64,000 bases of DNA, taken from positions 6,745,731 through 6,809,730 of the forward strand of contig OZ199838.1 in NCBI GenBank assembly GCA_964304625.1, in the 5' to 3' direction. A program made the position numbers and the translations under genes. The notes beneath the pieces are model-generated. The model was not told the DNA's origin and searched no databases. It saw only the letters and a list, made by a program, of their open reading frames with translations. Below are positions 3,746-41,142 of this stretch, piece by piece. Numbering within the stretch: position 1 is the first letter of the stretch; each line of letters begins with the position of its first letter. The stretch is from Kudoa neothunni (taxonomy: Eukaryota > Animalia > Cnidaria).

Positions 3746-3840
3746 AATACTTATACAGAGAAGCTATTAAAATAGACGGTTAAGTATTTCCTACTACCTG
3801 GCGTAGAAAATACGCTATAATTTGTGAACTACACAATGCA
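3746..3840 (+). ncRNA. Candidate Sm-class small RNA (spliced-leader-like or minimal U1-like)
   Basis: 8-bp stem AATACTTA(3746-53)/TAAGTATT(3781-88) enclosing G|GT at 3779. Hairpin TGGCGTA-GAAAA-TACGCTA (3799-3817). Sm-like AATTTGTGA (3819-27). TACTACCTGGCGTAG resembles the U1 5' end. Confidence 0.35.
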
Positions 3841-18700: not shown

Positions 18701-19202
18701 ATGGTAACAACGTCACCACCTATCCGCTTCTATTACTTTTTAAATGTATTTAGGCAGCTGGTAAAACTGGTAAAACTGGAAAAGATATAAAATCTAAGTC
18801 AAAGTCTATCTCTAGATCATCTAGAGCCAACCTTCAAGTGAATGATTTACTGCTTCAAGCAACTGTCTAATATCGGTTTAGTTCCCTGTTGGTAGACTTC
18901 ACAGACACATGAAACTTAGAACAACTTGCAAAGGAAGAGTTGGAGCTACTGCCGCCGTCTACATTGCTGCCATATTGGAGTACCTCACCGCGGAAGTGTT
19001 GGAGTTGGCCGGAAATGCTTGCAAGGATTTGAAGGTTAGACGTATTACTCCTCGACATCTTCAGCTTGCCATAAGAGGTGACGAAGAACTTGATACTCTT
19101 ATCAAGGCTACTATCGCCGGTGGAGGTGTTATTCCTCACATCCACAAAAGTTTGGTTACCAAAAAAGGTGACGGTAACCAACCTGGAGCACCTGATGTCT
19201 AG
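18701..19202 (+). CDS. H2AZ: Histone variant H2A.Z (H2A.V), 135 aa, 3 exons
   Basis: Exons 18701-18703 (ATG only), 18754-18837, 18882-19202. Motifs [71 protein letters not shown]. Intron positions (after ATG; LQ|FP) match animal H2A.Z genes. Confidence 0.97.
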
Positions 19203-22163: not shown

Positions 22164-23570
22164 TTAGTGGATATCGTCATAACCAATGTATTTTTCGTTT
22201 TTTACCACTGAATCAACCTCGATCTCGCTATTATGATTTTCTATATTGCTCACCAGGTTTATTTGATCAGTTTTTACATCCTGGTTACCAACACTTTTGG
22301 GGTAAATTCTAGGACAAGGAGGGGCTGGTTTTTCTGTTTTCACGTCTATTTGATATCCAACTAATTTCCTTCGGTTCAAGTGCCTTAGTACAACGTGTAA
22401 TATTCTGTTGACGGCATATATCGCTAAATTTAGCGAGAGTAATGCAATCGCAGCAATAAGTCTTTCTAAATGCATAAAATCACGAGATGAATCAGCGGAA
22501 AACAAAGCAAGCGTTTGAATAACTGTAAAAGCATTGTTCCGAATTGTTGTTATTCAGAGTTGTCACCTGGGTTTCAATATGTTTTAGAATGAGCTTGTTT
22601 AGATCGTCCACGACATTGTTTGCGAATTCTAGAAAAGGATTCGTGAACATAAACATTGCAGATTATGTACCGATTCTTTCCACCGACTTTTTAAACATAT
22701 CCTAAGAATTAACATTAAAACTAGTCGGGTACAAAGACTAATTTTTGTGATCGAACATTTATTGAAACATTTTAAAGTCCAGTTACGTTAATATGCTGAA
22801 GTTGGTTTGGTGTATTATATAAAAAAATTCATTTACCAATTTTACTTCTAATTTCATTGGGTTTGTTTGTAAAGAATTTTCCTAGAATAAGAGATCAAAT
22901 ATCTTTAATCATTATTTTTAAATGTGTTTACCCCTGAATCTTCTGATGTCGAATTACCCGCTTCTTTATTCGATGGAGCTGATTTGCCTTTTTCGGACTC
23001 ATCTAAAGTTATTCAGTTATAAAACTTAGTCACGTAGATACTGATGGTGGTAGTAGGAAGTGGTGCAACAGTCGATGTTATCTCTATAATTAGTTAAGAA
23101 AATATACAAAAATTTAATTGAGTAATCGAACTACCTCTACAAATGTATGGTGATACAAGCTTGTATAAACAATTTGTTGGAACGGTTTCACACATCAATA
23201 ACTGGACATAATATTTTAAATGCTGCACTTGAGTATGTTTCTCCGAAAATCCAAACACATCAGAACACACACTAAACAATTTCCATCAGTACTTTTTTGG
23301 AGGCTTATTACAAGCGTATTATGTCATCATAATTTTGACAATATCTAATAACGGTCCCTTCATAGAATATCCATGAAGCAGTGGTTTCATTGTAGTATTT
23401 GGCAAGCTTTCCGCATTCAAACGCCACATAACCATGGACAGGAATCGTTTGCTCAGCAAACCCAAATTTTACTACGATCTTTCAGAAATTATATTAAAAA
23501 TTTATTTTAATAATTTCTATATTACGTTTATAACAATATGAAAGATAAAATATCTGGAACAGCTAACCAT
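22164..23570 (-). CDS. APP: Divergent, miniaturised amyloid precursor protein (APP) family type I membrane protein, ~314 aa, 9 exons
   Basis: Exons 23570-23526, 23478-23312, 23271-23135, 23083-23042, 23002-22932, 22881-22837, 22701-22671, 22628-22524, 22465-22164 (945 nt, open frame, all GT-AG). Signal peptide; GFLD-like VAFECGKL..W..RYCQ..FVCSDVF..LMCE..NCLYKLVSPYICR with all six Cys; TM LIAAIALLSLNLAIYAV; tail HNSEIEVDSVV..E..GYDDIH. Confidence 0.75.
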
Positions 23571-31039: not shown

Positions 31040-34000
31040 ATGCGACTTCATATCAAAATTATAATTTTGTGGACTTATTTTTATGCTACTGGCGTTCGAG
31101 TGGAGGATGACTTTGTCGAAGACACCAATACATCCGCCAATGAGATCTACGTTCTTCCACGGAATTTCTATCCTTTACATTATCATATAAAACTAGCGTT
31201 GATATCGGATGAATCCACCTATACTGGTGAAATCAGCGTCGAAATCGTTTGTAAAAATAATACCGATAAACTCATTATACACAGCTCCAATCTTGAGATT
31301 CTATCTTACAATATTGTTTATATCGTTAACAAAACAGAATCATCTTCAAAATTACACACTCAAGCAGTTGACATGAATTCTTCCACAAACTCTGACCCCT
31401 ATGCTCGATTTGTTCAGGTATATTTGATCATTTTGACAAATACTAGCTAATATTATATGATTTGGGGTCGATAATTATTGTAAACTTTACTTTGGAATAT
31501 TTACACTTTAGTAAATTATACCTAATGAGTCATAAAATCCCAATATTTTTTTGTTGCAATAGTAAAAATTTCAATTAATTTGAAATATTGTTTATTCTGA
31601 AAATAAGCATTGGGTGAACAAAATTTTGGTATTATAATAAAATTGTAGAGTATTACAAAAGACAAAAATCTTTATGTGGTGACAAGCAAACGCAATGAAA
31701 TCGATGACACTGGCATGGTCGATAGCACAGGTTCCAATTACTTTTATACCGGAGCCAGCGAAAATAGTAATGCTGAAGAGCCGCCATTTCTAACGGACGA
31801 ATCCCAAGAAATTTTAATATTTCCTTTGAGCAAGATGGTAAGCAGAGGAGAAAAATTGCGGTTGGAATTGAAATATAGAGGAAAATTCTCAAACACACTT
31901 GAAGGTTTGTATAAAGTCAGCTACCAGGGTGACAAAACTGGTCAGATAAAGTAATTTGTATTCAACGCTGACTACTTTAACATAGGCTTATAAATTTTAA
32001 TTTTCAACTATTAAAGATCTTAAATATGTTTTCGGTCTACTATGTTAACAATTTAATCTTAAGAACTATAATCACTACTCATTTCGAACCCATTGGCGCC
32101 AGAAGGGCTTTCCCGTGCTTCGATGAGCCAATTTATAAATCCAATTTTACGATCTCAATTGTTCATGACTCAAATAAAAAAGTTGTATCCAACTCCAAAT
32201 TACTTTCCACTATTATGGATGAAGATCATCCAAACCATGCTATCACTGAATTCTATCCAACAGTCAAAATGAGTTCTTACTTGATTGCATTTGCTGTTAT
32301 GGACTACGTGAACATGCAGCTGGAATTGCCTAACAATGTTACAGTATTTAACGTTTAGTTGAGAGCATATCTCTATGATATATTTGCTTCCAACATTTTC
32401 TACAATAAAAACTCATCTCATTGTGCCGTACTTTAGATTTCAATTTTTGCACCTTATATCTACAAAAACCAATTAGATTTGGCAGCCAATGTAACATCCA
32501 AAGTGATCCCATTTTATGAGAAATTTTTCGGGGAGCCGTACTCTTTAGACAAACTTGGTATTTTTATAAATATTTGTGTTTCGCTATAACTATTGGTTCC
32601 AGATCTAATCGCTATACCCGAATTTGTATCAGGAGCGATGGAAAATTGGGGTCTTATTACTTTCCGAAATATTTACATGTTGTATGATAAAAGTAGAAGT
32701 TCAGCTGATAACAGGAAACAAATAATAACTGTGATTTGTCACGAATTAGCACATCAAGTATATAAATTAATACCTCATTCATCAAAATATTATTAAAGAT
32801 TGTGTAAATAGTTATTATTTTATTATTACTAATAATTGAACATTCGGCTTATATTAAAATAGTATATGACTTTAAAATATTTAATAATAATATATATGTA
32901 CATACAGCTAATAATCAAATATATCAATAATTTAAAAACCTTTTTCTACGTTTACTGATAAATATATTTATTAATACATGAATTTATTGTCATATGTTAT
33001 TTTTGCTTGTGAATAATCAATCACATTAAACACTTTACCAGTGGTTTGGCAACTTGGTCACTATGAAATGGTGGGATGATATTTGGCTCAATGAAGGCTT
33101 TGCCAACTACATCGAGCTGATTGGAGCTAACTACTTTGATCCTTCATTAAACATTGTATATTTGTATTTATTGGATCTCATTAATATTAAATATCTAGCT
33201 GGATCACCAAATAATTGGCGGATGGAGTTCTGCTCTTGATATGGACTCCATGAACAACACACGAGCTATCCTTTCGACGGTATATTCTGCCACAACCATC
33301 GATGAAATGTTTGATGTTATATCTTATAGCAAGGTAGGCGATTATCTTCTTTTATGTTCTTTTATATTGGGTTTTAAAAATATGAGGGCACTTTTTAAAA
33401 TAAAACTGCATGATTGAATGGTTTCAATAATAAATTTTAGGGAGCCGCCATTCTAAGAATGCTGCATGCTTTTATGGGCGATGATGCTTTTATTTCAGGA
33501 ATCAAAGTAACGCTTACAGTTATTTTAGAGATTGGCACTTAGTATAATATCAACTTAGAGCTATATACAAAAATTCAAATACTCAAATGCAAACACTAGA
33601 GATTTATGGCTTGAGTTTAATCAGGTGAAGATATCTTATTGTTGACAAATTAATGACCATCTGCTTAAAGTTTTTCCCTAAAGCCAATATAAAGACCATT
33701 ATGGATTCGTGGATTGAACAAAAAGGATTTCCATTGATAACCGTCAAAACCGATGCCAACTCAATTAAAATATCACAACAGTCTTATTTGAAATCGAAGG
33801 CAAGTCTTCTCAACAAACGAAACGATATAAACCAATTAGAGTAGATAGAAATGACGATAACCCTCTAAATTTTAATCTGACTACTAGGTTTCTATGGTAC
33901 GTTCCAATAAATTATATCCACAGTGAATCTAAAGGAAATATCTCTACAGTACTTCTAACACCGGTTTCAGGTATTTCATATGAGAAGTTGATTGATAGTT

Positions 34001-41023: not shown

Positions 41024-41142
41024 CGTCGCGATCATACGCGGTTGGTCACGCCGATACCCGTCAGATCATCGAAGCTAAGCAGCCGTCGGCTCCGTCAGTA
41101 CTCGAGTGGGCGACCCTCTGGGAACCCGGGGTGTTGCGATGT
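41024..41142 (+). rRNA. 5S: 5S rRNA gene (divergent, single dispersed copy)
   Basis: Conserved motifs CATAC, GATC, GAAGCTAAGC, AGTACT, GGGCGACC, TGGGAA. Helix I (ACGTCGCGA/TTGCGATGT) and helix II (GCGGTTG/CAGCCGT) pair. TTTT terminator ~10 nt downstream. Confidence 0.92.

Follow-up and report, generated by a model that had tools for sequence, protein, structure and literature searches.

The APP family includes vertebrate APP, APLP1, and APLP2, APPL of Drosophila, APL-1 of C. elegans, and APP-like genes in Hydra and Nematostella. To our knowledge, all described members retain E1 (GFLD, the domain resembling a growth factor, plus a copper-binding domain, CuBD), E2, and the YENPTY motif together. 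The physiological role of the APP extracellular domains is still debated. The GFLD spans residues 18-123 and contains the Cys98-Cys105 hairpin, and the CuBD spans residues 124-189 (PMC5281630, PMC8125876). Conservation of the 12 E1 Cys residues extends over the whole family (PMC8437438). An APP-like gene is found in Hydra and Nematostella and is ancestral in cnidarians (PMC3660159). Here, we describe a locus of Kudoa neothunni, a cnidarian and a tiny myxosporean parasite of fish muscle, as a candidate reduced APP derivative. It lies at 22164-23570 on the minus strand of the window, which is the whole 64,000-nucleotide stretch that was analysed (positions 6,745,731 to 6,809,730 of contig OZ199838.1, assembly GCA_964304625.1). 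We do not call it a member of the family because its descent is unproven and three of the four domain-level hallmarks of APP are lacking.

The locus is a compact, multi-exon gene. Its minus-strand translation contains VAFECGKL, W, IRYCQNY, DIIR|F|VCSDVF, and LVSPYICR, together with every string quoted in a first-pass annotation that had described it as a miniature APP-family receptor. The signal-peptide-like segment, the six-Cys module in exons 2 and 3, the one transmembrane (TM) segment, and the tail ending in HNSEIEVDSVVKNEKYIGYDDIH are all present as that annotation had reported; its path through exon 8 and its descriptions of the linker as acidic and of ~45 residues at the place of E2 as helical need correction. 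The features are as follows.

23526..23570, minus strand: exon 1, which starts with an ATG at 23570 and encodes MVSCSRYFIFHIVIN, with which a signal-peptide-like segment begins (Kyte-Doolittle mean 1.19); it ends in phase 0 at donor GTAATA.
23312..23478, minus strand: exon 2 (167 nt), where the predicted signal peptide ends (IVVKFGFA|EQ) and the six-Cys module has its first half: C1 (AFECGKL), then an NET sequon, W at C1+14, and C2 (IRYCQNY).
23135..23271, minus strand: exon 3 (137 nt), the second half of the module, with C3 (FVCSDVF), C4 and C5 (CETVPTNC), and C6 (LVSPYICR); two codons past C6, it closes in phase 1.
23042..23083, minus strand: exon 4, a linker rich in Thr and Pro (ITSTVAPLPTTTI); an alternative donor is possible at 23033.
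22932..23002, minus strand: exon 5, a linker rich in Ser, Glu, and Lys (ESEKGKSAPSNKEAGNSTSEDSG) with an NST sequon.
22837..22881, minus strand: putative exon 6, encoding ENSLQTNPMKLEVKL.
22671..22701, minus strand: putative exon 7, encoding DMFKKSVERI plus 1 nt; its donor, GTACAT, is in phase 1.
22524..22628, minus strand: exon 8 (uncertain), present in a short form (22567-22628), in a long form (22524-22628), or skipped.
22164..22522, minus strand: last exon (exon 9), with juxtamembrane residues, the TM segment, an 81-residue tail, and stop codon TAA at 22166-22164; its acceptor lies before 22522, or before 22465 in the 314-residue model.
22398..22460, minus strand: predicted TM segment (LIAAIALLSLNLAIYAVNRIL, by Kyte-Doolittle), followed by basic RHLNRRK.
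22167..22235, minus strand: C-terminal 23 residues (HNSEIEVDSVVKNEKYIGYDDIH), with an IEVD motif and a terminal YDDI of the YxxPhi type.

Exons 2 and 3 hold exactly six Cys residues, at residues 22 and 47 of exon 2 and at residues 2, 27, 34, and 44 of exon 3. The junction between these exons has donor GTAATAAG, acceptor TGTTTAG, a 40-nt intron, and a split codon TT|T that encodes Phe. Reading through the sequence turned up no other GT-AG junction that leaves both frames open, so the C1-C6 spacings of 25/11/25/7/10, including the C2-C3 spacing of 11, are firm. The GFLD Cys residues of human APP (UniProt P05067) are 38, 62, 73, 98, 105, and 117, paired 38-62, 73-117, and 98-105, with spacings of 24/11/25/7/12. 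The summed deviation of the Kudoa module from these values is 3 residues. A literature search found no paper giving all three GFLD disulfides. By a rough estimate, which assumes that spacings are drawn uniformly from ~29 values and is not a computed database statistic, the chance of so close a fit is ~231/29^5, or ~1e-5 per family and ~0.006 over ~500 six-Cys families.

The residues that flank the Cys point in the same direction. Compared with the human sequence, C-G-[KR]-L after C1, Asn at C1+8, and Trp at C1+14 agree at identical offsets, as do C-x-[DE]-V-[FY], which follows C3, and V-x-P-Y-x-C at C6. The intron that follows C6 lies in phase 1 of the second codon past this Cys. Intron 3 of human APP has the same codon position and phase (exon sizes 57+168+130 nt), and the other two intron positions are roughly similar. 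The GFLD fold consists of nine strands and one helix. The AF2 model of exon 2 is of low confidence, with a pLDDT of 54. In a blind Foldseek search (3Di+AA) of 350,542 PDB chains with this model, APP GFLD/E1 structures occupied ranks 1-3 (4jfn, 7mrk_A, 4pwq_B; E 1.5-2), and 7mqy (APLP2, 33% identity over 27 columns), 3ktm, 7mrm, 1mwp, and 4pqd stood lower in the list, with E-values of 1.5-4 overall. Taken alone, these matches are at the level of noise; they show only that no solved family fits exon 2 better than APP, which does not imply that the match is significant. Judged from the sequence, the Cys spacing and local motifs appear to resemble the APP GFLD far more than chance would lead one to expect. 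The first-pass annotation had equated the six-Cys domain with the APP GFLD; spacing, motifs, and the top Foldseek ranks agree with this, but no profile or sequence match was found at the exon level, even at E<=10. On balance, we lean toward descent of the six-Cys head from the APP GFLD.

Several results weigh against this kinship. The sequence, profile, and fold searches were run exon by exon, and the six-Cys module is split over two exons. The six-frame genome scans covered 40.26 Mb in 4 contigs, and the absences reported from them are exon-level negatives with presenilin as the sole eukaryotic positive control. Pfam searches with exons 2, 3, 8, and 9 singly gave nothing, even at E<=10. Of the profiles proposed for comparison with the first-pass annotation, APP_N (PF02177) and the APP C-terminal domain were compared exon by exon and gave no match at E<=10, and the six-frame scan with PF02177 gave no candidate at the locus or elsewhere in the genome. 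PDB phmmer searches with exons 2 and 3 did not list APP; across these two exons and exon 9, YafQ and Frizzled-6 noise was returned. Self-profile hmmsearch of exons 2 and 3 against the PDB found only COX6b and YafQ noise and no APP, and for the last exon the PDB search held no APP chain and a word-index search was empty. Exhaustive HMMER comparison of exon 2 with 1.84 billion representatives found no orthologue. Four bacterial repeat proteins (RHS, SLH/Flg_new) in that search were rejected as spurious, as their matches do not cover the Cys. A protein-language-model look-up (ESM-Atlas features) with exons 2 and 3 found nothing. The exon-2 Foldseek match, with an E-value of 1.5, a probability of 0.47, 27 columns, and a model of pLDDT 54, looks like a top match in noise. 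By shape only (VIA-align, atlas search), the exon-2 model is a generic three-stranded beta-meander, WW- or Kelch-like, and these comparisons are uninformative. The exon-3 model (pLDDT 47) gave no APP match in Foldseek. Of the four regions that define APP, three are missing, and the path through exons 6-9 is ambiguous.

Much of this would fit an orphan type I surface protein, specific to the lineage, with a six-Cys module that has no kinship with APP and a likeness that is a coincidence picked post hoc. Such a protein would work alike, with a Cys-rich head, a mucin-like stalk, a TM segment, and a sorting tail, and would have no bearing on APP evolution. The uniformly negative sequence and profile tests, a Foldseek E-value of only 1.5, the lack of homologues among the 1.84 billion representatives, and the joint absence of CuBD, E2, and YENPTY all speak for it. 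A preprint (bioRxiv 10.64898/2026.02.11.705288) describes myxozoan genomes as rich in orphan and lineage-specific genes. Set against it are five Cys spacings that deviate from those of the APP GFLD by 3 residues in total, and W, CG[KR]L, and PYxC at the same offsets. Also, the module is N-terminal and follows the signal peptide of a type I protein; APP is ancestral to the phylum, and the genome has no other APP candidate. Finally, APP had been named beforehand and tops the blind PDB search. We regard the orphan explanation as possible but rather unlikely, and descent from the GFLD as the better account of the head.

Beyond the head, the Kudoa protein departs from the family in most respects. 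After C6 there is no Cys and no coding room for a CuBD, and PF12924 was unmatched in the six-frame genome scan. E2 (PF12925) had no match at the locus, and at most ~45-60 residues separate the linker from the TM segment. The introns sum to only 448 nt, which leaves no room for hidden CuBD or E2 exons and excludes them. No NPxY is found in the 81-residue cytoplasmic tail, which ends GYDDIH, and the APP C-terminal domain (PF10515) was unmatched by the last exon and across the genome in the six-frame scan. The first-pass annotation had called CuBD and NPxY lost and E2 mostly lost, and their absence is borne out. Unlike the family, the Kudoa protein also has a neutral loop in place of the basic heparin-binding hairpin, a tail of 81 residues versus ~47, a total length of ~300 residues versus ~600-770, and no exon-level APP_N match in Pfam. 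It shares with the family a predicted type I organization with a signal peptide, an N-terminal six-Cys module of near-identical spacing with several of its flanking residues, a Ser/Thr-containing linker after the Cys-rich region, and (I/V)EVD followed by G-Y-[ED] near the C-terminus.

Two weak APP_E2 matches elsewhere in the genome were rejected as unrelated open reading frames (ORFs). One of them (C2:5148002-5151319, ORF 1432-2577, 381 aa) is a near-threshold false match, with 20.4 bits against a cut-off of 22.2. We take this ORF to be of the talin/HIP1R type, with an I/LWEQ domain. Such a false match is a caution for automated APP annotation in the Kudoa neothunni genome.

A second APP gene had been one of the points to check, and no other APP_N, CuBD, E2, or APP C-terminal match was found in the genome. 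A presenilin is clearly encoded at C1:12121296-12122996, with matches of up to 64 bits per exon. The PID/PTB domain (PF00640) gave no match at E<=10 and the caspase domain (PF00656) none at E<=0.01 in the six-frame scan. In a survey of the Notch pathway, the malacosporean T. bryosalmonae was the sole myxozoan in which the PID protein Numb was detected (PMC12166595), and caspases are reported to be missing from myxosporeans (PMC10192318). A wide loss of PTB adaptors and of apoptosis machinery in this genome would fit the negative scans. As neither PID nor caspase was detected, an NPxY site and a VEVD site would be under no constraint. The caspase site that had been described as kept is there in sequence, as IEVD, but carries little functional meaning in a genome with no detected caspase domain and should not be taken for a working caspase site. 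The proposed uncoupling from PTB adaptors fits the absence of a PID match, an absence that is itself at the exon level only. It is in our judgment an even call whether a myxosporean has here kept its last APP-family gene, with GFLD, stalk, TM segment, and tail, and with CuBD, E2, and NPxY lost alongside an apparent genome-wide loss of PTB/PID and caspase domains while presenilin was kept.

The 3' half of the gene can be read along three paths. The intron after exon 6 is 135 nt, which is unusually long, and could conceal a 9-nt micro-exon. The short exon 8 (22628-22567, 62 nt) is well formed, with donor GTGACA and acceptor TTTTACAG, and sits between two well-formed mini-introns of 42 and 44 nt. 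The chain that includes it is 959 nt and out of frame; through the acceptor before 22522, the frameshift adds 18 hydrophobic residues (LFKRLLCFPLIHLVILCI) and a stop, for a product of 218 aa. The long exon 8 (22628-22524), joined through an atypical GTT donor to the acceptor before 22465, yields an in-frame product of 9 exons and 314 aa (length by arithmetic). Skipping exon 8, from exon 7 to the acceptor before 22522 over a 148-nt intron, yields an in-frame product of 8 exons and 298 aa (checked by hand). The 9-exon frame of ~314 aa in the first-pass annotation is thus in frame with the long exon 8, but it requires the atypical donor and is one of three paths, of which the 298-aa model is equally in frame and the third gives 218 aa. 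The 62-nt segment at 22567-22628 on the minus strand could be a cassette exon for a secreted or lipid-anchored isoform, or merely part of the 148-nt intron. Nested [D1,2] twin introns at the boundaries of exons 8/9 and 6/7 were worked through by hand and dropped as a reading, since they do not restore the TM frame.

These ambiguities raise the possibility that the 3' half of the model is wrong, so that the Cys-rich protein is secreted or lipid-anchored (218 aa) or the TM and tail frame is a separate small gene. Neither version would have the topology of an APP-like receptor. The best splice signals flank the short exon 8 on either side, and yet its inclusion disrupts the frame; the in-frame alternatives require a GTT donor or a 148-nt intron, while the intron length of the genome is 49 bp. 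Intron retention is also reported as a frequent tendency in myxozoans (PMC12239612). Against this, the 129-codon frame with a TM segment and basic stop-transfer lies directly downstream on the same strand and can hardly be non-coding. Apart from an internal Met, this frame lacks a signal or start context of its own, and both in-frame paths have canonical GT-AG sites. We consider a wrong 3' half improbable.

The composition of the locus is that of a gene of this genome. The published Kudoa neothunni assembly is 40.2 Mb, with three chromosomes and a mitochondrial contig, a GC content of 30.4% genomic, 36.8% exonic, and 26.0% intronic, and an intron length of 49 bp (PMC12239612). At the locus, the exons have 36.3% GC versus 25.7% for the introns, and six of the eight introns are 39-51 nt long, with GT-AG sites; intron 1, between MVSCSRYFIFHIVIN and IVVKFGFAEQ, is 47 nt. 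These GC values and intron sizes agree with the published ones (PMC12239612), in a window of ~30% GC. The last exon lies within a 129-codon open frame, and only 8 of the window's 9,202 open frames are that long. The gene is single copy in the genome at both the protein and the DNA level. There are too few Kudoa RNA reads for annotation, according to the genome paper, and colinear gene order is reported for Kudoa sp. trachurus and K. iwatai (PMC12239612).

A decaying pseudogene, or a set of chance open frames with no functional product, would be consistent with the missing orthologue and the frame problem at exon 8. It is difficult to reconcile with 8 or 9 successive exons that have canonical splice sites, consistent phases, and the exon/intron GC contrast typical of the genome, or with an intact ATG, signal peptide, even number of Cys, TM segment, and stop, and we consider it very improbable. 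The best explanation as a whole, and one that we somewhat favour, is that a myxosporean parasite has a genuine gene, single copy and restricted to its lineage, which codes for a small type I membrane glycoprotein of ~300 aa with a six-Cys head descended from the APP GFLD.

The topology of this glycoprotein is predicted from hydrophobicity. The first ~25 residues (MVSCSRYFIFHIVIN followed by IVVKFGFA) are hydrophobic and would form the N-terminal signal peptide. The sole hydrophobic segment of the last exon is LIAAIALLSLNLAIYAV, with a best 19-residue Kyte-Doolittle mean of 1.73. A type I, single-pass orientation is predicted because the basic RHLNRRK follows the TM segment, in line with the positive-inside rule. 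The tail, said earlier to be ~80 residues, counts 81. The linker, described earlier as Thr/Ser/acidic, is Ser/Thr/Pro-rich and only weakly acidic.

That the head is homologous to the GFLD is inferred, as are the topology, glycosylation, sorting, and function of the protein, and the product would most likely be a type I glycoprotein of the parasite surface. In the proposed scheme, an ancestral APP would have lost the CuBD, E2, and the YENPTY/PTB-docking tail. A short Ser/Thr/Pro stalk, O/N-glycosylated, would hold a Cys-rich, GFLD-like head with three disulfides at the surface of the parasite cell, and this head may serve as a binding or adhesion module. Binding of heparan sulfate through the C4-C5 loop is improbable and another ligand would be expected because CETVPTNC (ETVPTN) is without the basic residues of the heparin-binding hairpin of APP. 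The YxxPhi-type YDDI at the tail end suggests adaptor-complex trafficking over PTB signalling, and may couple the protein to sorting by clathrin adaptors. As the genome has a presenilin, the ectodomain might be shed and cleavage by presenilin might follow.

Other features lie in the same window. An open frame at 18909-19202 on the plus strand, ~3 kb from the gene, is presumably the C-terminal half of an H2A-type histone, H2A.Z-like. Several open frames at 31040-32358 on the plus strand resemble, in our estimation, the N-terminal part of an M1-family aminopeptidase, probably a multi-exon gene. A 5S rRNA gene is found at 41024-41142 on the plus strand (Rfam RF00001, 86.9 bits, E 3.4e-17). At 3746-3840 on the plus strand, a candidate spliced-leader or minimal U1 RNA had been proposed; no family was matched there at the Rfam gathering threshold, and we take it to lack a nematode-type SL1.

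If the likeness to the GFLD is coincidental, the gene would simply add to the orphan surface proteins known from a parasite of fish, of some interest as a surface antigen but no surprise. If the proposed descent is true, the locus would be a natural experiment on the GFLD alone, in an animal without neurons. It would mean that the GFLD can be selected for by itself and that its function is separable from PTB-adaptor signalling. It would also provide a concrete case of the extreme loss of genes and domains in Myxozoa.
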